Both the position numbers and the translations under genes were made by a program. Below are positions 11,967 through 63,641 of a DNA stretch of 64,000 nt, piece by piece (within the stretch, counting starts at the first letter, position 1; every line of letters begins with the position of its first letter). The stretch lies in the sequence record PV400809.1. One strand, given 5' to 3'. Below the pieces are notes generated by a model. That model was given only the letters and a program-made list of their open reading frames with translations, ran no database searches and was not told the origin of the DNA.

Positions 11967-12671
11967 CTACTGGGGATCGGGAAGAACGTCCTCAGAGGGT
12001 GTGTCACTCTGGAGCTCCTGGGGTTTATCCCAACCTAAGACCTTGCATTGCTTACGAAGACTCTTGATCTTAACCTGAGCCTCCTTCAAATAGGTCACCA
12101 GGCATTGGAGAGCGCTGAGTTGAACTTCTAACAGCGCTTTGTTAAAGACCATCCCATCATTGTGGTGAATGTTCATCCACATCACAATGGTCCGGTGACA
12201 ATCCCCAACGCAGAACCTACCTGCCTTATCCTGGTCGATGAAATAGAAATAATGCCCCGTGAAGGGCGCTTCAATGTTCTCAGGGTTGAGCCACTGTCGC
12301 TTATAGACGGGTTCCTTTAGGGGTTTCTTCGGGTTATTGAGGACCTTTCTGAACGCCTTGCAATACTCCCGTACGCCCTGCTCCAGTAGATTGAGCTTAT
12401 TGAAGAACAACACCAATTCAGGATCATTATCGTGCGAATGTAACCGAACAGTGATGTTCTCCATGTGGATATTGAAACGACCCGTCCAAAAGGTGGTGGG
12501 GGGATAGGCTAAAGGACTGACACTCATGGAGTAGAACACCGCGTCACCCCCAGTCCATTCCTCTTTACCCTCACCACCCTGGTCGCATAACCACCCTCTT
12601 CCATATTCCAACAACGATTGTCTTGACATAACCACCTCATAACAAATAAAGGACATACACCCTCCTGCCAA
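11967..12671 (-). CDS. Hypothetical protein
   Basis: Up to 234 aa; true start probably a downstream Met (MSRQSLL). Confidence 0.65.
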   Translation of the reverse strand: MAGGCMSFICYEVVMSRQSLLEYGRGWLCDQGGEGKEEWTGGDAVFYSMSVSPLAYPPTTFWTGRFNIHMENITVRLHSHDNDPELVLFFNKLNLLEQGVREYCKAFRKVLNNPKKPLKEPVYKRQWLNPENIEAPFTGHYFYFIDQDKAGRFCVGDCHRTIVMWMNIHHNDGMVFNKALLEVQLSALQCLVTYLKEAQVKIKSLRKQCKVLGWDKPQELQSDTPSEDVLPDPQ

Positions 12672-17073: not shown

Positions 17074-17143
17074 TTTGTTGACTCTCCTGGGTCTTTAAGG
17101 ATTGCTCACGTACCCATTCAGCTATTTCACGTAGAGTTGACAT

Positions 17144-17353
17144 TCAGTTCTTATTACCCGAGAGAAAACGAGTGGTGAGTTCAACGGCATCCTTACCAAA
17201 CCGACGCTCAGCAGCTAGGAACCCAGCCCCGGGAGATGTTCCTATCTCCATTGTCATCACGAAGCTGATACGAGCCAACCACAACGCTTCCCGATCAAAC
17301 TGGAGACCCAGTGGGCTTACGGGTGGACGGTTAATTGAACGTCGTATGCTCAT
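17144..17353 (-). CDS. Hypothetical protein
   Basis: 69 aa, GGGGA RBS. Confidence 0.55.
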   Translation of the reverse strand: MSIRRSINRPPVSPLGLQFDREALWLARISFVMTMEIGTSPGAGFLAAERRFGKDAVELTTRFLSGNKN

Positions 17354-17658
17354 GCTGTTTCCCCCTTAGTCTGTTTAGCTCGTAAGGCAAGAATCGCTTT
17401 CCCTGCATTGCGAGCGGTGGGTGTGGTGACCCTGTTGATAATCCGGTACCAAGTGATCCAAACAGGATTCAGTTTACCCGACTTCGTCACCAGATCTGGT
17501 TCAGGCATCTTCTTGACCCGTTCCACCTGATGATAACTGACCTCCTTAGGTTTCAGGCCGTATTGGTTACCGTACCACGTTCTCCATTTAGGATTGAACT
17601 CTCCGTTAGGAAGAATCATAGGAACTTCTTCCTCAGGACTCCCAGGGGATTTGGTCAT
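17350..17658 (-). CDS. Hypothetical basic protein with internal G-x-x-NP-x-W-x-T-W-Y repeat
   Basis: NGEFNPKWRTWY and SGKLNPVWITWY. Confidence 0.65.
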   Translation of the reverse strand: MTKSPGSPEEEVPMILPNGEFNPKWRTWYGNQYGLKPKEVSYHQVERVKKMPEPDLVTKSGKLNPVWITWYRIINRVTTPTARNAGKAILALRAKQTKGETA

Positions 17659-18077: not shown

Positions 18078-18129
18078 GAGGTGTTACTCCTTTGGGTTAA
18101 ACAATGATCGTGTCGCTCATTCATATGAA

Positions 18130-18141
18130 TAATGTAGGTTT
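18130..18141 (-). promoter_or_regulatory. Early-promoter motif
   Basis: AAACCTACATTA on the minus strand in an AT-rich intergenic region. Confidence 0.6.
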
Positions 18142-18221
18142 GAGAATAAATACGTTTTAAACTAAAAGAAATAAACACCCACCACCCCAACTCCTTTTAC
18201 AGAGTGGGGTGGTTAGGCGGG

Positions 18222-29175: not shown

Positions 29176-29198
29176 TAGAGGTATTCCTTGCAAATGAA

Positions 29199-29210
29199 TA
29201 ATGTAGGTTT
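29199..29210 (-). promoter_or_regulatory. Early-promoter motif
   Basis: AAACCTACATTA immediately downstream of the sbcC stop. Confidence 0.6.
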
Positions 29211-29214
29211 AAAA

Positions 29215-51101: not shown

Positions 51102-54074
51102 ATGGTCGATACATCTCGTAGACAGTCCAAGGGTAACACGCAGGTGGATTTTGCTGCTTTGCGTAAATCGTTGACGACTCAAAACCCAGTGGTTGCAGCG
51201 ACCCTGCGTAATGCTACGCCTCGTAACGGTTCATCCCCTGAACGGGATGAGATCAACGGTCATCGGACGGTTAACCCTTACAAACTGGAAAAGCTGAGTA
51301 ATATCATCAGCAACAACATTAACGCGGCTACTGATTTGCGGTTAATCACGCCGTATATCGACAAAGCCACCTTGATCTGGCAGACGTGTCTACTCTACCC
51401 CAATGGGAAGCAAGACAAAATCCTCACCTACGACACCCAACCGTCCCCTATTAAAAATGCAAAATTGCATGATGAACTCCTCACCATCTGGGATGGCTAC
51501 TATACCAATGACTATAAGATCGAGAAAGATTTGAGGGAAATGATCGCGGATATTCTCTTCAATACCGGGAGTTATGTGCTGTTTAACTTGAGTCGCCCAG
51601 GTCTCGATTATTTGATCAACGGTGCGGAGCAATCCGGGGATGTTGCCGGTAACGAACAGTTCATGACCCAGGCTAAAGAGATGCTAAGTCATGAGTTCGT
51701 AGTCGTCAACGGTAAAGTCCGGGTGAAGAACAAAGGTGTCTTTGTCGGTAATAGAACCAGTCATAATACAAATAACACCGTCAGTGGTCTAGAATCCCTT
51801 TTCCTGAACCCTTCTTCTCAGGATGCTGGAGTGGAATTCAATATCTTTGAAGACGATAAAGACTCTGTCTCGAAGGAATTGGCTCAGCTGATTGATATTA
51901 CCCTGACCGATAACCCAGCGGTCTTGTACCTCCAGAAGTTCGAGGAAAGTAAACGTCGGTCGAATGTTGCCGCGGTAACGGGAGCGGAAGGGTTGGACCT
52001 TATTATCCAAACCGCTCTGGTGGCTCGTACGAACCCTGGAGATGATCAACAGCACTATACGGATGCAGATGGTAAGAAACGCAAACGTAAGAAGCCTGCT
52101 GATCCTCAAGCCACTACCGTTAACTTAACAGAAGGTGAATTGAATGAGTTGAGTAACCGTTTGTTCCCTCAACGGAATCCGGTGAGTCAGATCATTCAAT
52201 TCAGTAAACCCGTCGATGCCTTGAAGATTGCACCCTATGGACGGGGGATTACCTACAAGGTTCCCAGTGAAGCGGTGATTCCGATTCACATTAACGGGAG
52301 TAATGGAACTCAAACGGACTTTATCCTCCTCACGGATCCTCGGGATGGGAGTTTCCTGAAGAATACGAATGACTTCGAGTACTACCAGAGTAACCGAAGC
52401 AATGCCAGTATGATTGCTAACCGCCCTAAAAACGGTAGTACGAACAACCTGGTTAAACAGCTTCGTCAGATCCAAGAAGGGAAAGAATGTGATTTCGATA
52501 TGACCGAGTTCATTGAGATCTCGAAATCGAATATCATTCGACGGTACATGCAGTCAGTCCTCAGTGGTCGCGGGGAGAATATCAGCATTGAAATCGATGA
52601 GGAAGCCAACAAGATCTTCCTGCAACGCATTTTCCGTAGGCAGGGGATTCGGTGTTTGTATGTGCCTGGGGAAGCGATGACCTATATGGCCCTGAACTAT
52701 AACCGTTTAGGGATTGGTCAGTCGTTGACTCAAATGGCTAAAATGCACATTGCTCGTTTAGCGGCCTTAGACCTCGCTGACGCGTTGGCGAACCTAGAGG
52801 CGGCTACACCCCACACCCAAATGACGATTAACCTCCAGGAGAACGACGCAGAGCCTTTTGCGGGTATTGCGGCGACCAGGGCAGCGTTCTTTGAAGCTAA
52901 CCCACGGTTGCACAGTATTCTCTCAACATCTCAACTATCAGTCCCCATGATTGTGGATACCTTGAGGGAGAACTCCTTAACAGTTAAAGTCAACGCGGGT
53001 GAGAACCCTTACTTCCCTGCCTCGGATATTCAGCTCGATCAATTGGAAAAGAACATCTTCCGCCCGGTCGATCAGAATAGTCGTACGGAGCTGTTGAACA
53101 AGATCGCCAACTACTTCCACCTGTCTCGGAGTTGGTTGGATGTCAGTGACGATCAGAACAACTTCCAGATTGAGGCCCTGGCTGAACACCAGATGCTCCT
53201 GAACCAAATCGTTAACTGGCAAGAACGCCTGGCAGACTTCATTATTGACTTCGAACGTAAGCATGCTCACGTGAACGGGCCTTTAATGAAGAAGTTGGTG
53301 ACCAAGATCTCGGAGAATAAGAAACTCTGGTCACCGGACAGTAAGGAGAAACTGGAAGGGTCTGACGAAGAGATCATTAAAATGATTCTCGTCGACTTCT
53401 TGACTAACCTTAAAGCCCACTTCCCCATCCCCAGTTCTGTTGAAACGACCGCTAAACTCAAGGACAGTTTGGATACGGTGAGTCAGCTGGTGGAGTCGTG
53501 GGTTGCCATGGCGGGTCATTCGGGTAACCTGAAACAGATTGCTGAGCTCTTGGGTATTCCGGAATCTGATGACGGAGAAGGGAATAACAAGAACCTGACG
53601 GCGATTAACGAGCAAGTGAAGTCAGTGCTCACGGTTGAAGCCTTCAGGCGCTATAACCTCCCGATGCCATTTGACGACATCCTTAACGATGGTAAGGGTG
53701 GTGGTCTTGCTTCCTTGGTGAACGCCGTTGTGAGTCAGCGTCAGAATGTCGGGGAGTTCCTGGCAGCCCTGATTGCAGGGACTCGTGATGCGGATGCTAA
53801 GGTCATTAAGGCACACGCCAAGAAGATCGATAAGGCTGATAAAGACCTCCAAGAAGCCAGGGATAAGGCGAATCTCCCTGAAGGGGATCAGAACGCCTTA
53901 GAGAATACCCCTCCCGGGGAAGAGGAAGAACCGGAAGGTATAGAGGAAGAGGAAGGTTCTGAAGCAGGTACTGAAGGAGAGGAGGAAGAAGAAACCTCTC
54001 CTGAGGGTGAAGAAGGCAATGAGGATGGGACCAATCCTGAAGAGAACAGTCCCGATACCAATCCCTTTGCTTAA
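51102..54074 (+). CDS. Putative portal protein (phiKZ gp129-like) with acidic C-terminal tail
   Basis: About 990 aa, divergent from the gp128-like gene as I recall in phiKZ; AGAGG RBS; portal call rests on size and synteny. Confidence 0.5.
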   Translation: MVDTSRRQSKGNTQVDFAALRKSLTTQNPVVAATLRNATPRNGSSPERDEINGHRTVNPYKLEKLSNIISNNINAATDLRLITPYIDKATLIWQTCLLYPNGKQDKILTYDTQPSPIKNAKLHDELLTIWDGYYTNDYKIEKDLREMIADILFNTGSYVLFNLSRPGLDYLINGAEQSGDVAGNEQFMTQAKEMLSHEFVVVNGKVRVKNKGVFVGNRTSHNTNNTVSGLESLFLNPSSQDAGVEFNIFEDDKDSVSKELAQLIDITLTDNPAVLYLQKFEESKRRSNVAAVTGAEGLDLIIQTALVARTNPGDDQQHYTDADGKKRKRKKPADPQATTVNLTEGELNELSNRLFPQRNPVSQIIQFSKPVDALKIAPYGRGITYKVPSEAVIPIHINGSNGTQTDFILLTDPRDGSFLKNTNDFEYYQSNRSNASMIANRPKNGSTNNLVKQLRQIQEGKECDFDMTEFIEISKSNIIRRYMQSVLSGRGENISIEIDEEANKIFLQRIFRRQGIRCLYVPGEAMTYMALNYNRLGIGQSLTQMAKMHIARLAALDLADALANLEAATPHTQMTINLQENDAEPFAGIAATRAAFFEANPRLHSILSTSQLSVPMIVDTLRENSLTVKVNAGENPYFPASDIQLDQLEKNIFRPVDQNSRTELLNKIANYFHLSRSWLDVSDDQNNFQIEALAEHQMLLNQIVNWQERLADFIIDFERKHAHVNGPLMKKLVTKISENKKLWSPDSKEKLEGSDEEIIKMILVDFLTNLKAHFPIPSSVETTAKLKDSLDTVSQLVESWVAMAGHSGNLKQIAELLGIPESDDGEGNNKNLTAINEQVKSVLTVEAFRRYNLPMPFDDILNDGKGGGLASLVNAVVSQRQNVGEFLAALIAGTRDADAKVIKAHAKKIDKADKDLQEARDKANLPEGDQNALENTPPGEEEEPEGIEEEEGSEAGTEGEEEEETSPEGEEGNEDGTNPEENSPDTNPFA

Positions 54075-54092
54075 TCAAAAATAAACGTTATA

Positions 54093-54137
54093 CCCCCTAA
54101 CCCCTAGCCCCTTTAACAGGGCTAGGGGTTAGGGGTT
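54093..54137. terminator. Bidirectional terminator
   Basis: CCCCTAACCCCTAGCCC/GGGCTAGGGGTTAGGGG stem flanked by A- and T-tracts. Confidence 0.75.
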
Positions 54138-54146
54138 TATTCAGTG

Positions 54147-54704
54147 TTACTCTTTACTCTCAATGATGTACGGCATGAAGAAGGTCGGACCCAGGCCTTC
54201 CATTGCACGGTAGAAGTTCAGCGAGCGCAGTTCTACCGAGGTTTCAGGATTACCCACCAGGATCGACAGGTTTTTCAGGTCGATCTTCTTGCGTTTGGCG
54301 AATTCCACATAACGCTGTACGGCGACATCGATGTAGTATTCTTCGGGGATAAGACCCGGACGGGTAACCTTACGGACTTCTTCCACCATCTCAATAAGGA
54401 GTTCTTTATTGAATTCCCCATTGTCATAGAGCGACAGTACATTGATCAGAATGTTGTCGAAGTCCTGGTTATCCTCTTCACTCTCGTCTTTCGAGGCTTT
54501 GGGAGACGTTTGAGGGGTAGCGGGAGCTGGCTGAGCGGGAGGAGTCACCGGAGGGGTGGTTACCGCTTTAGCCTTCTCGTCCTCAGGAGTGGAGGGGTTC
54601 TTCTGATCGTTGTTTTTCGACATCGCTTTAACCTCTTGGTAAGTCGGGGGATAAGACATAATATTCGTACAGTCTGTATCCGTTAGAAACCGGTCGAGTA
54701 ACAC
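54147..54704 (-). CDS. Hypothetical protein with Pro-rich disordered N-terminus
   Basis: TPPVTPPAQPAPATPQ linker; start probably MSKNN. Confidence 0.65.
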   Translation of the reverse strand: MLLDRFLTDTDCTNIMSYPPTYQEVKAMSKNNDQKNPSTPEDEKAKAVTTPPVTPPAQPAPATPQTSPKASKDESEEDNQDFDNILINVLSLYDNGEFNKELLIEMVEEVRKVTRPGLIPEEYYIDVAVQRYVEFAKRKKIDLKNLSILVGNPETSVELRSLNFYRAMEGLGPTFFMPYIIESKE

Positions 54705-57934: not shown

Positions 57935-58489
57935 TTACCCCTGTGCTAGTTCATGAAGACGTCCAGCTGCTTTGAGTTTACGGATTTCACTGATCGACTT
58001 ACCGTATTTAGCGGCGAGTTCCCTGACCGTCCCTTCCGGAGCCGGTTTATTCGCAAAGCAGAACTTTTTGGGTGTTTCTTCTCGGCTGACACTCTGGGAG
58101 TGATCAGGGAAACGTCGACTGAGGTCTTCCAGGAATTCCTTAGCTTTGGTGATGTAAACCTTAAGGTAGGCGTGGCCTTCCGAGATATCACTTTCAGTCA
58201 ATCGTTGTAACACAACCCTTTCTACGATTCCCTTGGCGGCACTGCCTTCAGTATCGTAGATCATTTTATTTATCAGTCCAACCGCATAACCATTTATTGA
58301 CTCTCCATAACCCTCTATTGACTCTCCAGAGGGCACACTCTTGAAACTGTGCAGCATGTGCTTCAAGTAGATAACATCACCAGTGTGCCCTGTTTCCATC
58401 AGGAATAACGCCACTTCAAATCCGTTGTAACACCCCAGATCCTCTTGACGAGCAACGTCGAGTTCTTCCATTTGTTTTTCAGTAAACAT
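57935..58489 (-). CDS. Hypothetical protein with C-terminal HTH-like motif
   Basis: TVRELAAKYGKSISEIRKLK; GAGGA RBS; promoter motif upstream. Confidence 0.65.
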   Translation of the reverse strand: MFTEKQMEELDVARQEDLGCYNGFEVALFLMETGHTGDVIYLKHMLHSFKSVPSGESIEGYGESINGYAVGLINKMIYDTEGSAAKGIVERVVLQRLTESDISEGHAYLKVYITKAKEFLEDLSRRFPDHSQSVSREETPKKFCFANKPAPEGTVRELAAKYGKSISEIRKLKAAGRLHELAQG

Positions 58490-58519
58490 TGGTTTATTCC
58501 TCGTGGCTTAATACATCAA

Positions 58520-58531
58520 TAATCTAGGTTT
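58520..58531 (-). promoter_or_regulatory. Early-promoter motif variant
   Basis: AAACCTAGATTA on the minus strand, just downstream of the terminator at 58555-58589. Confidence 0.5.
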
Positions 58532-58554
58532 AAAATACGCTATACCGTAATAAA

Positions 58555-58589
58555 CCCTCCTACCTCCCTTCAAAGGGAGGTAGGAGGGT
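58555..58589 (-). terminator. Intrinsic terminator
   Basis: CCCTCCTACCTCCCT/AGGGAGGTAGGAGGG stem followed by TTTATT on the minus strand. Confidence 0.75.
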
Positions 58590-58609
58590 ATTTACACGGT
58601 GTTTACGGG

Positions 58610-58906
58610 TTAGAGCTTAGAAGAGAGTTTGTCTCGGGGGTTCGAGTGGGAAGTACCGGGGAGCAAGGGCTTATTCTTGAGGGTGCCGGAAATGGTCTTA
58701 CCGTCCGCATTCACCACGTAAAGATCCCCATCAATCACCCGGAGCAAGGTTCTCCCATCAGCAAACTCGACCGTGAGCTCCCGCCGTTCCTTATGTGGGT
58801 CCCAAGAGATAGCAAACCGATCTCCCTGGCCCACAATAATACCTTCATAGTCACGGGAGGTGCCATTCCCACAGTCCTCTCGCATGACCTTTATAATGAA
58901 CGACAT
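58610..58906 (-). CDS. Hypothetical protein
   Basis: 98 aa, AGAGGA RBS; LYVVNADGKT motif. Confidence 0.7.
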   Translation of the reverse strand: MSFIIKVMREDCGNGTSRDYEGIIVGQGDRFAISWDPHKERRELTVEFADGRTLLRVIDGDLYVVNADGKTISGTLKNKPLLPGTSHSNPRDKLSSKL

Positions 58907-58943
58907 GACGGTATCCTCTGCACATAGCGGATAAAGAAAAGGT

Positions 58944-58980
58944 CCTGTTCCCTACCCCTCTGAGAAAGGTAGGGAACAGG
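58944..58980 (-). terminator. Terminator of the tRNA transcript
   Basis: CCTGTTCCCTACC/GGTAGGGAACAGG 13-bp stem followed by TTTTCTTT on the minus strand. Confidence 0.75.
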
Positions 58981-59004
58981 TACACCGTCACCCCTGTCAA
59001 GAAG

Positions 59005-59105
59005 CCGCGGTCCATCCTGGAAGAGAGAAGAGAACAGGATGGCTGGCGGAGCGGGACAGTGCAGGGCATTTGGGGGAGGGTAGTGCCGAGCCTGTGTGTC
59101 CCAGT
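59005..59105 (-). ncRNA. Candidate sRNA with two pyrimidine-loop hairpins, downstream of tRNA-Thr
   Basis: Stems GGGACA…TGTCCC and CCATCCTG…CAGGATGG; minus-strand loops CUACCCUCCCCCA and UUCUCUUCUCUCUUC. Confidence 0.4.
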
Positions 59106-59123
59106 CTTTGGGGTAACGATGTT

Positions 59124-59199
59124 TGGTTCCGTGACCAGGGTTCGAACCCGGGACCTACTGTTTACGAAACAGTTGCTCTACCTACTGAGCTATCACGGA
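59124..59199 (-). tRNA. tRNA-Thr (anticodon CGT)
   Basis: TCCGTGA/TCACGGA acceptor stem, GCTC-AGTAGGTA-GAGC D arm, ACTGT-TTCGTAA-ACAGT anticodon arm, TTCGAAC T loop, encoded CCA; 76 nt. Confidence 0.96.
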
Positions 59200-59219
59200 G
59201 TAAACTTAACCTAAATGGA

Positions 59220-59408
59220 TCACCACGATTTCAGTTCCAAAGGTGTCAGCCACCCATTGGTTGAAGTCTTTACGCTTGAGTCCACAGTAGGAGAAAATAA
59301 CAGACGAAATTCTACCGGGCGAACCAGTCCAACAAACCGTATTCGTTCATTGTGTTTTTCTTCCAGTGTTACACTTGAATCGAAAGGGGGTCCGTTCGCC
59401 ATTGTCAT
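59220..59408 (-). CDS. Hypothetical small protein
   Basis: 62-aa ORF with AGGT upstream. Confidence 0.35.
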   Translation of the reverse strand: MTMANGPPFDSSVTLEEKHNERIRFVGLVRPVEFRLLFSPTVDSSVKTSTNGWLTPLELKSW

Positions 59409-59540
59409 ACCTATTCACCCCATCACAAGGAATAGATAGACCTGTACTGTTTTATGCTCTCGGCCACGGACGACTGCGAGTAACCGCTAAGGGTTACTGT
59501 TACGAGAGCACCCCTTACAAGGGAAAGATTACGGAAACGA

Positions 59541-59732
59541 CTAACTGGACTTGGAAGGGGTCTTTTTCGAAGATTCCGCTTTATCGGAACTGGGGTCGAA
59601 CCACCCCGCCTTCTTGTCTTCCTCGTACCAATGCTTAGCCACCTCGTGATCGATACCCACTTTCTTAGCGAACTCAGCGCTGTGGGCGGCGTCTCGCATA
59701 AGGTTGGCTTGTTTACGTGATACACTTGGCAT
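59541..59732 (-). CDS. Conserved small phage protein (MPS.S.KQA..M..AAH..EFAKKVGI family)
   Basis: N-terminal pattern recalled from many phage hypothetical proteins; GAGG RBS. Confidence 0.75.
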   Translation of the reverse strand: MPSVSRKQANLMRDAAHSAEFAKKVGIDHEVAKHWYEEDKKAGWFDPSSDKAESSKKTPSKSS

Positions 59733-59789
59733 AGGGTTACCTCTTCTAGAAAAAGAGCGCCCGACATAGATTGGAACGGATGTGGAAGA

Positions 59790-60137
59790 TTAATGCTGAC
59801 CCTTTACCTCCGCCCAGAAGGAAGCCTTCAGGTTACAACCCCACGCATAGAACTTGACGTAGTAACGAAGGGTCTCCTCCACCGTTTCAACCAGTTCTTG
59901 GGCGTGTTCAGCGCTCATAACCGATTCCTTAGCCGGTGGGCCCAGGTCTACCCGTTCCTTAAAGGCGGCTGTAAGCACCGGGTAGTTGGCCTCGAGGGGA
60001 AGATCGTTGGTCAGGAAGTACTTGTGGTACAACAAACTCAACCCCGAGCAGACCCCCAGGTAGCGGTCATCGCTGACGGTTTGAAGTTGGAGACACTCTT
60101 TAACCAATCGAGCCCAATGGACCATTCTCATGTTCAT
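59790..60137 (-). CDS. Hypothetical protein
   Basis: 115 aa, GAGGGAG RBS. Confidence 0.7.
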   Translation of the reverse strand: MNMRMVHWARLVKECLQLQTVSDDRYLGVCSGLSLLYHKYFLTNDLPLEANYPVLTAAFKERVDLGPPAKESVMSAEHAQELVETVEETLRYYVKFYAWGCNLKASFWAEVKGQH

Positions 60138-60170
60138 TCTCCCTCGGTGGAATAAGGATTAACGGAATGC

Positions 60171-60977
60171 TCAGTGATGAGCAGACGGTTTGGTGTTACG
60201 CCGGGTGATTTCTTGGTAATGGACCTCCTCCAACGACAGGGAAGGATTGTCATTACGCTTACTCAACACATACCCCAACAGCAGGGGTTGGTGGATAACG
60301 ATTTCCCGGGAAGTGAGAGGGAATTTCTCACTGTAGTACGGCACCCAGCTCTGTTGTTTCAGCAGTTGTTCGATTACCCGGGTTTTCTCATCCTTAGCGA
60401 ATTCGATGTTCTCGTGGGTGAATTCGAGCTCATGGGTAATGATGTACCAATGGATCCAAGGATGCGCACCGCCCAAGCGGTCGCAGTAGAAGACACTGGG
60501 TTCGTTGTCCCCTGGGACGTAGAAGCGTCCGGGGTCGCTCTCTTCAAAATTATCCCCTGTGTGGTATACGATAGAACTGAACTGACCGTTGGGTAGGGTT
60601 TTATTCCGATAGAACTCCACATCCCAACGATCCACCACTTCCATTCGAGGGTCCGAAGGATCCTCCGAATTGCAACGGATAATGTAGATCACGAAGGTGT
60701 AGGACCCATCCGGGTCTACAGGCCGATCCAACCCCGCAGAGCGGAGGTCGTACAATGCCCGATAAGGATCCTTGGAGTACAACCCCTCTTCCTCATCAAC
60801 TATCCGTTTAACCACTTTAACGGCTTCAGGGAGCGTTGTGAAGGCTTTTGCGTCGTACCAGTGGGTCATGTAGCGGGGATGGTCAAACGCCTCACCATAA
60901 GCGTTATAGAAGCGTGTAACGGCATCTCCTTGGTTATTGAGACGGGAATCAATCCGGATGATGTAGGAAATGGACAT
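60171..60977 (-). CDS. Hypothetical protein, paralog of 62008..62793
   Basis: Shares PG.NEPS.FY…GAHPW..WYI..HELEFT. Confidence 0.75.
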   Translation of the reverse strand: MSISYIIRIDSRLNNQGDAVTRFYNAYGEAFDHPRYMTHWYDAKAFTTLPEAVKVVKRIVDEEEGLYSKDPYRALYDLRSAGLDRPVDPDGSYTFVIYIIRCNSEDPSDPRMEVVDRWDVEFYRNKTLPNGQFSSIVYHTGDNFEESDPGRFYVPGDNEPSVFYCDRLGGAHPWIHWYIITHELEFTHENIEFAKDEKTRVIEQLLKQQSWVPYYSEKFPLTSREIVIHQPLLLGYVLSKRNDNPSLSLEEVHYQEITRRNTKPSAHH

Positions 60978-61032
60978 GATGATTTCCTTTTAAGGGGGGG
61001 TAGGGTTGTAGGACGTGGGGAAGAGTATTCCA

Positions 61033-61398
61033 TCAATGGAGGGTGTGTGGGATTTCTTCGACTTCACTCATGTATTCTTCGGCGACACGAAGCACGCCTT
61101 CCAACGTTTCGCCGCCGTACTTAGCATCTTTGTAGATTCCCATCGACAATTCGCCATCATTGTACATCATGATGACTCCCTGGGGATGGATACCTTCAAC
61201 ATTTTGAATACGGATTGAGATGATAATCGCAGTTAAGAGGGTGGGTTGATATTTATATCCCTGATGCAGGATGAAATCGACTATTTCGCCGTCAATCTCT
61301 AAGGTAATACACACCCTCGCGTTAGGACCCTTCAGGCGCTGGATATCTTGAAGATTCTTCGCCATCGATTCAAATACTTCTTTAATCGTTCTTTCCAT
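61033..61398 (-). CDS. Hypothetical protein
   Basis: 121-aa ORF. Confidence 0.65.
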   Translation of the reverse strand: MERTIKEVFESMAKNLQDIQRLKGPNARVCITLEIDGEIVDFILHQGYKYQPTLLTAIIISIRIQNVEGIHPQGVIMMYNDGELSMGIYKDAKYGGETLEGVLRVAEEYMSEVEEIPHTLH

Positions 61399-61473
61399 AA
61401 ATCACCCAAATACGAAATGGAGGGTTGTAGGTTAATCGCCGAACTGATCGTTTTGGGTACCTATAAACTCCTC

Positions 61474-61971
61474 CTAGTTACGGGGTTTTACAGCGATAAC
61501 TTCGAATGCTTCACCGATAGGCTTGTCAGCGTAGAGGGCTCCCAACGGAACGTTAACGTCGAAGTATTTACCAAAAAGGTGAACGAATTCATCCGCTCCA
61601 AAGGTAAACCCCTTATTCTCTCCATTACACACGTTGATTTCCTCCCCACGGAAATCATAGACCCGCCTGGGAGTAACGAGGATAGCGCGTTGTTCCGCAT
61701 CCGCAATCAGGCTTTGCCATCCTTCAAGGGTCAAATGGCAGGGGAGGGTCGTCAGTGAATACGCCGCTTTCATGCGTTCGGGGTTGGGTTTCTTGTAGAA
61801 CACCGCACAGAGAATCGGTTGGCCTTCAATGGTCGATTCAAACGGGCAGGTGTAAAAGAAGTCGCCCTTTTGGATGTCATTGGTTACCAGCGCGTACTGG
61901 CGATGACGAATCAACATACATAGAGTTTTTCTAGCCATTACAAATTCCTTGACTACTGAAATAACTACCAA
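61474..61971 (-). CDS. Hypothetical protein
   Basis: Start probably MARKT after AAGGA. Confidence 0.65.
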   Translation of the reverse strand: MVVISVVKEFVMARKTLCMLIRHRQYALVTNDIQKGDFFYTCPFESTIEGQPILCAVFYKKPNPERMKAAYSLTTLPCHLTLEGWQSLIADAEQRAILVTPRRVYDFRGEEINVCNGENKGFTFGADEFVHLFGKYFDVNVPLGALYADKPIGEAFEVIAVKPRN

Positions 61972-61995
61972 CAGAGGCCCTGTGAGGCCTCTGTT
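61970..61995 (-). terminator. Hairpin/terminator
   Basis: AACAGAGGCC/GGCCTCTGTT 10-bp stem. Confidence 0.55.
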
Positions 61996-62007
61996 GAATG
62001 ATTGTCT

Positions 62008-62793
62008 TTATTGTTTATCCGAAACACGACGAGACAATTTTTGTTGGTGGATTTCTTCTAGGGTGAGATCGGGGTTCTTATTACGAAGAGCCAGAACATC
62101 CCCCAGGAGTACTAGATCCCCCACTGCAACCTGATCCCCTGCCTTAGGAAACATCTCGTCATAAAGCTCCACATTGGAACTTTGGTTACTGATCTTACCG
62201 ATGACCTTGTCTTTCTCTTCCAAAGCAGTTTTAACTGAAGCGGAAGTGAACTCAAGTTCATGACTGCGGATATACCAGTACACCCACGGGTGAGCGCCCT
62301 CCAATGCCTTGGGGTAGAAGAGACTCGGTTCATTCTTACCCGGCAAGTAGGGCATGTTGGGTTGATCGGGATTCGTTTCGACGCGGTAGAAAGTCCTGGC
62401 GAGTTTATCTCCTCCACCCCATATGAAGTCGACTCCCCAGCGATCAACTGTTTTGACTTTCAAGTCGGAGGGATCGGTGTAGGAGAACTCGACAATGGAG
62501 AGATCGAACTCGTATTTCGTACCGGGAACAGGTGCGTTGTAATCACGACGCAGTATCCGGAATGTGAGGGGAAGATCGACCGAACCATCACCGAAGCGGG
62601 TGTTCTTATCAGTGAGCATCCGGTTAATGACTTCAGTAGCACTTTCGAGGCTGTGGAAGGTACTACAGTCCATCCAGGACTTGCTGAAATCGGGATAACC
62701 ACGAGAAGAGGGATCCTCGGCATAATACTGAGTGATGGTTCCCGGGTGGGAAGTGGAACGTTGGTCGACTTGAATGATGTAAAACGTGTTCAT
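62008..62793 (-). CDS. Hypothetical protein, paralog of 60171..60977
   Basis: Same conserved blocks; GAGGGG RBS. Confidence 0.75.
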   Translation of the reverse strand: MNTFYIIQVDQRSTSHPGTITQYYAEDPSSRGYPDFSKSWMDCSTFHSLESATEVINRMLTDKNTRFGDGSVDLPLTFRILRRDYNAPVPGTKYEFDLSIVEFSYTDPSDLKVKTVDRWGVDFIWGGGDKLARTFYRVETNPDQPNMPYLPGKNEPSLFYPKALEGAHPWVYWYIRSHELEFTSASVKTALEEKDKVIGKISNQSSNVELYDEMFPKAGDQVAVGDLVLLGDVLALRNKNPDLTLEEIHQQKLSRRVSDKQ

Positions 62794-62810
62794 ACCACCC
62801 CCTCGTCTTG

Positions 62811-63134
62811 TTAAGTCAAAAGGTCACTGAAATTGTCATGTAGGATTTGGGTGAACGGCTCTCCCAAGTCTTCACAACATGGGTCACCTATTCTCTCGGC
62901 CAGATGATCCATGTGTAGATTATCGAGGAATTCCGTGTGTTCTTCCTCGCTGTACCAAGATTCAACGAGATGGTCTAACACACAATAATTGATTTCCCCG
63001 TCGTACTCGATAACTCGATACGTCCCATTCTCCAGGTATTCTTTGTTGTTATGGAAATCAACGGAATCCCGTTCGCCTACGATGGGACTCGACAGAGGGG
63101 TCCGTTCTTTCCCTTCCTTACGAACTGTTGCCAT
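62811..63134 (-). CDS. Hypothetical acidic protein
   Basis: 107 aa, AAGGAG RBS. Confidence 0.7.
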   Translation of the reverse strand: MATVRKEGKERTPLSSPIVGERDSVDFHNNKEYLENGTYRVIEYDGEINYCVLDHLVESWYSEEEHTEFLDNLHMDHLAERIGDPCCEDLGEPFTQILHDNFSDLLT

Positions 63135-63158
63135 GGGGGTTACTCCTTCTGAAAGATG

Positions 63159-63641
63159 TTAAAAGTCTTCGACGTAGAAGAGTTTGACCAATTCAATATG
63201 ACGAACCACTTTACCCAGGAGTTCGTCTTTGTAATCCACACCCCCATGCAACAGGTGTTTGTTCTTGAAATCCCGTTCCAGATCTTTCATTCCCCAGCCC
63301 AGGGTCCCTACGGTCAACCCTGCAATGACCCCTTTAGTGTTCCGTACGATCTTAATCCGGAAACGAATGTTCCCTGAATACCCTTCTCCGAAACCGTGGA
63401 TAGCACCTTTGTTCCGCTCCTGGTAGATGGTGTGGAGAAAGAAGAAGTCTTCCGTCTTGGCTTCACCCCGGGGTAGGTGATTGAGAATATCCTTATCGAT
63501 AGGGAGTTGGGTGATTACCCGATCGAAGTTGGAGAAGAACACCCCAACTTCCTCGTACCCTTTGTAAATGTCATCCACAACGCCGGGGAGGGGTTGAGCA
63601 TTAATGATCATTTCTTGTAGCCGTGATTTAATCGGTAGCAT
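63159..63641 (-). CDS. Hypothetical protein (FGEGYxGN motif)
   Basis: 160 aa, GAGG RBS. Confidence 0.7.
   Translation of the reverse strand: MLPIKSRLQEMIINAQPLPGVVDDIYKGYEEVGVFFSNFDRVITQLPIDKDILNHLPRGEAKTEDFFFLHTIYQERNKGAIHGFGEGYSGNIRFRIKIVRNTKGVIAGLTVGTLGWGMKDLERDFKNKHLLHGGVDYKDELLGKVVRHIELVKLFYVEDF

Follow-up and report, generated by a model that had tools for sequence, protein, structure and literature searches.

Bacterial tRNA trailers are ordinarily short. In E. coli, the 3′ external transcribed spacer known as 3′ETS-leuZ, of about 50 nt, is an Hfq-bound sponge of small RNAs whose partners are RyhB and RybB; a further parallel is offered by the tRNA cluster of phage T4, with its stable 'species 1 and 2' RNAs, and in Staphylococcus RNAIII and RsaE are small RNAs with C-rich loops. 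Theta ribozymes, small HDV-like double pseudoknots, are found beside phage tRNAs; the phages concerned are predicted to infect Bacteroidota or Bacillota, and CCA is encoded in just 4.5% of the associated tRNAs (PMC10879173). In phage PAK_P3, sRNA2 (ncRNA2) is encoded between two tRNAs of the phage and reaches high levels late in infection (PMC4933390); it has no start site of its own and arises by processing of a longer transcript (PMC4933390, PMC10914365). A small RNA also adjoins a tRNA in phage 201phi2-1 (PMC11512511), and phiKZ produces many short structured RNAs that end at terminators within 5′UTRs, with two modes of read-through (PMC10914365).

Here, we describe a 143-nt segment of phage DNA for which the best explanation is a non-coding, structured 3′ external transcribed spacer of a single tRNA gene. 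The stretch of DNA that was analysed (64,000 nt; hereafter, the window) matches Pseudomonas phage vB_PaeM_GXNNE2 (PV400809) at 100% identity with no shift in coordinates, and is about 97% identical to phage EL and to seven other Elvirus records (Chimalliviridae). Its large ORFs match hallmarks of EL, namely a GroEL-type chaperonin, an NAD-dependent ligase, an SbcC-like protein and tail proteins, and the source phage is, as judged by sequence, an EL-type (Elvirus) jumbo phage. The features of the locus, in the direction of transcription, are the following (SD, Shine-Dalgarno):

59220-59408, minus strand: remnant of ORF095, 62 aa (153 aa in EL), the upstream context; the deletion is common to the window and phiRU
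59124-59199, minus strand: tRNA-Thr (anticodon CGU), with an encoded CCA at 59124-59126, found by ARAGORN and Rfam (69.1 bits)
58981-59123, minus strand: trailer element, 143 nt, between the tRNA CCA end and the terminator
59110-59122, minus strand: 5′ strand of P1, a 13-bp closing helix that begins 2 nt after the CCA; paired >0.99, invariant
59052-59103, minus strand: hairpin A, of 7 + 2 + 4 bp with internal loops
59069-59083, minus strand: loop A, 15 nt, all-pyrimidine, CUACCCUCCCCCAAA, containing the anti-SD core CCUCC
59005-59049, minus strand: hairpin B, of 4 + 8 bp
59020-59034, minus strand: loop B, 15 nt, all-pyrimidine, UUCUCUUCUCUCUUC
58982-58994, minus strand: 3′ strand of P1; paired >0.99
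58933-58980, minus strand: intrinsic terminator, with a 17-bp stem and a 3-nt loop (58944-58980) and a U-rich tail (58933-58941)
58610-58906, minus strand: downstream gene, ORF097 of EL, 98 aa, no family
58518-58534, 29197-29213 and 18128-18144, minus strand: copies of the 'putative phage promoter' motif of EL

The tRNA-Thr(CGU) is the only tRNA that ARAGORN finds in the 64 kb of the window. Directly upstream of it, ORF095 of EL (phrog_2586, of unknown function) is shortened in the window and in phiRU, as listed above, and is removed by a larger deletion in PaBa1; the tRNA and the trailer are intact in every case. Local duplications are also seen in vB_PQ1 at the ORF095 region (window 59200-59540). 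Comparison of the sequences indicates that this region, 59200-59540, is an indel hotspot, from which the tRNA and the trailer have always been spared. The motif annotated in EL as a 'putative phage promoter' (core AAACCTAsATTATT) occurs in three copies in the window, against 0.16 expected, and none was found on the minus strand of 59200-63600. As no motif of the EL class lies between the tRNA and 63.6 kb, the promoter of the tRNA would belong to another class. Beyond the next terminator, the protein encoded by ORF098 of EL (phrog_24977; window 57935-58489) is only about 76-78% identical to its counterparts in other Elvirus phages, whereas the DNA just upstream is about 97% identical, which suggests that the promoter/terminator at 58500-58600 marks a boundary, either mosaic or fast-evolving; phiKZ-like phages have distant homologues of ORF098 (about 33%).

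The MFE fold of the trailer element is a three-way junction formed by the closing helix P1, hairpin A and hairpin B. By itself the element has an MFE of -56.4 kcal/mol (z = -4.40), and none of 200 dinucleotide shuffles was as stable; with the terminator, which contributes about -30 kcal/mol, the MFE is -86.2 kcal/mol (z = -6.37), and the same fold is retained in a 326-nt context that includes the tRNA and the start of the next gene. By the partition function, loop A is unpaired with a probability of 0.98 and loop B with one of 1.00. In a composition-corrected MFE scan (regression) of 143-nt windows over both strands of the 64 kb, only 17 of 1774 windows were more stable than the element (z -3.07), which thus ranks in the top 1%; several of the 17 contain terminator hairpins (e.g. 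58458-58607 and 53994-54215). For the opposite strand of the element the z-score was -1.03 as compared to -3.07, an asymmetry that fits the four G-U pairs of the fold, which are A-C mismatches on the plus strand. When growth of the transcript is modelled in snapshots, hairpins A and B are the first to form, followed by P1 and then by the terminator, and the tRNA, the element and the terminator are predicted to fold as separate modules. At the level of structure prediction, these results confirm the trailer as a strand-specific RNA structure beyond chance. The original prediction had placed two stable hairpins between the tRNA CCA end and a strong terminator; both were recovered, the loop sequences that it quoted are exactly those of the predicted fold, and the C/U-rich loops are exposed, as it had proposed, but it missed the closing helix P1.

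No other terminator-like site in the region is as strong as the hairpin at 58944-58980, and termination at this site is predicted to be unconditional. HHBS47_1 and HHBS8_1 both carry a hairpin-tip inversion, in which the tip (window 58953-58967) has been exchanged for its own reverse complement, and two U-G pairs thereby become C-A mismatches in the transcribed strand; in HHBS8_1 the U tract is also shorter by one T. Elsewhere in the window, the most stable fold of all, at 53994-54215, is an 18-bp perfect hairpin between the convergent genes 51102-54074 (plus strand) and 54147-54659 (minus strand), and probably terminates transcription in both directions.

The element is present in 10 of the 10 Elvirus records found, as a single copy in EL, and is unique in the window. 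BLAST searches of 50,697 phage records detected it in Elvirus only. A covariance model gave no match in FishSpeaker, VB_ZK_P1, OBP, PS1 and Vibrio phage 2 TSL-2019, the five nearest non-Elvirus jumbo phages as judged by a virion protein; it also gave none in phiKZ, around the tRNAs of OBP and PS1, or in the remainder of the window. A scan with a tRNA 3′-half pattern returned EL only from IMG/VR and nothing from JGI metagenomes or GTDB genomes. A pattern made of the two loops gave 52 and at least 119 chance matches, none of them credible by the covariance model; one weak match to the model (E = 0.3, 14 bits) was thousands of bases away from its pattern match. Searches of Rfam 15 at permissive thresholds identified the tRNA only, all other matches being far below the gathering scores. 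A theta or HDV-like ribozyme was considered and rejected: the fold is a nested three-way junction in which the helix partner is 130 nt away (in theta ribozymes the 3′ strand of P1 is within a few tens of nt of the cleavage site), the CCA is encoded, and no HDV-family match was obtained. We regard the predicted structure of the trailer as solid, and the element, limited to one shallow genus, as an ordinary candidate.

Our preferred interpretation, which we hold tentatively and with somewhat less than even confidence, is that the trailer is the source of a small RNA, about 190 nt in length, whose action is mediated by the two open pyrimidine loops. The trailer would be co-transcribed with tRNA-Thr, and maturation of the tRNA 3′-end would cut it free as an RNA of about 190 nt, formed by the junction domain, the terminator hairpin and the U tail, a layout that would conform to the usual build of a bacterial small RNA. 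Once released, the RNA would act in trans via the exposed loops, and its targets may be a few purine-rich RNA sites or a pyrimidine-tract-binding protein, rather than ribosome-binding sites in general. In favour of this interpretation are the stability, modularity and strand asymmetry of the predicted fold, the open loops, the evidence against a coding function, the retention of the element in all Elvirus records, the location of most substitutions outside base pairs, and the precedents from PAK_P3 and 201phi2-1; a substitution density at the level of neutral proxies, the lack of homologues in the searches beyond the genus and the lack of an outstanding target speak against it. The combination of exposed pyrimidine loops with a strong terminator, both as modelled, makes a discrete tRNA-linked RNA plausible. 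One small transcriptomic run contains six short contigs of an EL-like phage, at a depth of 2-4 and scattered over genes. One of these covers 58968-59178, spanning the tRNA/trailer junction and ending in the 5′ arm of the terminator, and could represent either precursor RNA or DNA; other public runs with EL-like phage look like DNA. If made and stable, the trailer RNA would be a defined non-coding RNA for phage EL, for which we found no transcriptome map in the literature.

It is also possible, although we consider it rather unlikely, that the junction domain and the terminator form a module that serves the tRNA transcript in cis alone, the released piece having no job of its own. The module could insulate the folding of the tRNA from downstream sequence, hold off 3′ exonucleases until processing has taken place, or provide a cleavage site at a double strand or at the junction. 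The position of P1, which starts 2 nt past the CCA, fits such a role, as does its pattern of variation: P1 and the junctions are invariant among the Elvirus genomes compared while hairpin A drifts, with five of the eight variable sites of the element. The predicted independence of the tRNA, the element and the terminator as folding modules also agrees with it, and so does the outcome of the searches for a trans target in the EL genome and in the window. Complements to 10-mers of the loops are not enriched in the window; in the EL genome, the best ungapped matches to the loops are no better than those to shuffled loops (p = 0.59 for loop A and p = 0.115 for loop B), and a search by duplex energy gave no single outstanding target. 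However, two open pyrimidine loops of 15 nt are unnecessary for insulation, and tRNA trailers are ordinarily short. Moreover, OBP and Aeromonas phage PS1 carry other tRNAs without a comparable trailer (the long gap between tRNAs in OBP contains ORFs).

In our view it is unlikely that the segment has no function and is a structured spacer or a remnant (such as an earlier element that has decayed), kept only through its position between a needed tRNA and a needed terminator; this reading and the cis-only module are nonetheless serious rivals of the preferred interpretation. The pattern of substitutions is what such a spacer would show. Segregating sites amount to 5.6% of the element (8 of 143 positions), 6.1% of nearby intergenic DNA and 6.2% of the third codon positions of ORF094, with none at the 76 positions of the tRNA-Thr among 8 Elvirus genomes; since the density in the element equals that of the local neutral proxies, no purifying selection is visible at the level of sequence. 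Six of the eight sites are unpaired and two are paired, a bias with p = 0.11. One of the paired changes keeps its pair (U-A to U-G, in the stem of hairpin B), and the other disrupts the last pair of hairpin A, an A-U pair, in three genomes, which again favours a spacer. In all, 36 of the 38 pairs are constant and there is no pair in which both sides change, but covariation has no power here because the relatives are at least 96% identical. The confinement of the element to one shallow genus and its indel-prone neighbourhood point in the same direction. Against a functionless spacer, a z-score of -4.4, a 130-nt long-range helix and strand-specific G-U pairs are hard to obtain without selection on the RNA. 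Furthermore, ORF095 has been deleted repeatedly and the trailer never, and neither ARAGORN nor Rfam detects any remnant of a tRNA or a ribozyme.

A general anti-SD function, in which loop A, through a CCUCC sequence that resembles the 3′ tail of 16S rRNA, would occlude phage or host ribosome-binding sites as a repressor or decoy, appears improbable. The CCUCC core is flanked by C residues within a fully exposed loop, and a few start regions pair well with loop A, the best being those of genes 11967-12656 (-18.1 kcal/mol) and 62008-62793 (-16.2 kcal/mol). However, when the 69 annotated start regions of the window (phage only) were compared with internal coding segments, with shuffled loops as controls, the pairing of loop A was -6.48 kcal/mol for start regions and -6.44 kcal/mol for internal coding segments, a difference of -0.04 kcal/mol, the same as for shuffled loops; the preference of loop B for start regions was -1.19, on a par with that of its shuffles (-1.0). 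The GGAGG sequence is found in only 3 of the 69 start regions. Moreover, three of the eight variable sites are in the loops: loop A varies at two positions among these near-identical genomes, and loop B shows one C-to-U change, in phiRU. Thus, a sequence of the anti-SD kind that the original prediction attributed to loop A is present, whereas no preference for the start regions of the window was found. With no start-region preference and no outstanding target in EL, the proposed phage translational repressor or decoy is a conjecture. As to the expected conservation of the loops, the C-rich core of loop A is unchanged, but the loops as a whole do vary.

The best co-localised complement to both loops is found in the intergenic region between the divergent genes ORF014 and ORF015 of EL (EL 17.2 kb), which contains a 10-nt complement to loop A and a complement to 14 of the 15 nt of loop B (15 of 15 for the phiRU variant). 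Relative to shuffled loop pairs, the site has a p of about 0.01 (ungapped), but by duplex energy it ranks only 47th of 5630 windows, and we take it as a lead that lends no support to trans action. The intergenic region is 650 bp long, is located outside the window (at about 140.9-141.4 kb of PV400809), and is bordered by ORF015, which codes for an HslV-like peptidase. It includes a block of about 226 nt (EL 17130-17355) that is identical in six Elvirus genomes, with varying flanks. Within this block, G-rich mirror arms, GGAGGAGGGGG and GGGGGAGGAGG, are placed around an 11-bp hairpin, along with a purine tract and a GC hairpin. The z-score of the fold is -3.97 for the purine-rich strand, as compared to -1.68 for the other strand, and there is no match in Rfam; from its sequence, the block is likely to be a conserved non-coding element. 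It is very unlikely, though conceivable, that the trailer is a trans-acting RNA in which loop A mimics the 3′ tail of 16S rRNA and whose loops dock on the SD-like purine block of this 226-nt element; were this so, the trailer and the ORF014/ORF015 element would be partners in an SD/anti-SD RNA pair through which translation is tuned in a jumbo phage that forms a nucleus. phiKZ has a stretch (UAAGGGGGUGAUCC; NC_004629 212888-212901, plus strand) that complements the 3′ tail of 16S rRNA apart from one G-U wobble; none of this type was found in EL when up to one mismatch was allowed.

A role as the leader or attenuator of ORF097, in which the junction domain would sense a signal and set the balance between termination and read-through, strikes us as most improbable, in spite of a suggestive layout. 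The structured domain is followed by the terminator and, 37 nt past the terminator stem, by the start codon of ORF097, which has an SD; no promoter-like site was found between the terminator stem and this start codon. There is also the precedent of the phiKZ 5′UTR terminators with their two read-through modes (PMC10914365). Against this, an antiterminator or riboswitch was rejected, as no competing antiterminator was found: structures without the terminator are worse by 22-30 kcal/mol, the 5′ arm of the terminator is predicted to be unpaired in all snapshots of the growing transcript until the 3′ arm appears, and no riboswitch family is matched. As for ORF097 itself, a single-sequence structure prediction has a pLDDT of 59.5, too low for use in a structure search, and a search for the locus based on this gene returned EL alone.

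A CDS (ORF096) is annotated across the element in EL, MIZ-Pa99, HHBS47_1 and vB_PQ1, but not in GXNNE2 or PaBa1. An open frame does exist, as a 72-aa ORF at 58851-59069; it passes through the terminator and overlaps ORF097. Its shared ATG is located in loop A and, because of this location, has no SD, while EL alone starts ORF096 at an upstream ATG created by a substitution found only in EL. A protein-coding reading, whether as ORF096 of EL or as the 72-aa ORF, was rejected and has next to no chance of being correct, given that four of the four varying codons inside the element alter the amino acid, that a 1-nt deletion shifts the frame in HHBS8_1, that the frame runs across the terminator from a start without an SD, and that no match was found in PHROG or Pfam. 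The sequence comparison makes it almost certain that ORF096 of EL, like its copies in several records, is not a gene, and the annotation is corrected here.

With respect to the systems outlined above, theta ribozymes resemble the trailer in being structured RNAs within a few nt of a phage tRNA, and they take part in tRNA end formation. RNAIII and RsaE share with it exposed C/U-rich hairpin loops able to pair with G-rich ribosome-binding sites; however, they belong to another phylum and show no homology, and the trailer loops are not enriched for complementarity to start regions. The small RNAs of PAK_P3 and 201phi2-1 are closer: like the trailer, they are non-coding, lie beside a tRNA gene of a Pseudomonas phage and are restricted to a genus. 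They are documented by RNA-seq and Northern blotting, whereas the trailer RNA is a prediction made from sequence. The phage families also differ, and no relation in sequence or structure was found (no match to the covariance model). The phiKZ 5′UTR RNAs come from a jumbo phage of the same family and are likewise short and structured, ending at a terminator upstream of a gene. In contrast to the trailer, the 5′ end of which would come from tRNA processing, they start at a promoter of their own; they are products of premature termination, whereas for the trailer no alternative to termination is predicted.

The comparison with 3′ETS-leuZ is the most direct with regard to position. The E. coli spacer is host-encoded and short, while the trailer is phage-encoded and folds as a 143-nt three-way junction, and the two have no sequence similarity. 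Yet 3′ETS-leuZ lies between the last tRNA of its transcript and an intrinsic terminator, is released when the 3′ end of the tRNA is processed and retains the terminator at its own 3′ end, and the trailer, too, is located between the 3′ end of a tRNA and the intrinsic terminator that closes the transcript of this tRNA. Should the trailer RNA be made and be stable, it would be an addition, from a jumbo phage, to the short list of small RNAs derived from tRNA trailers.
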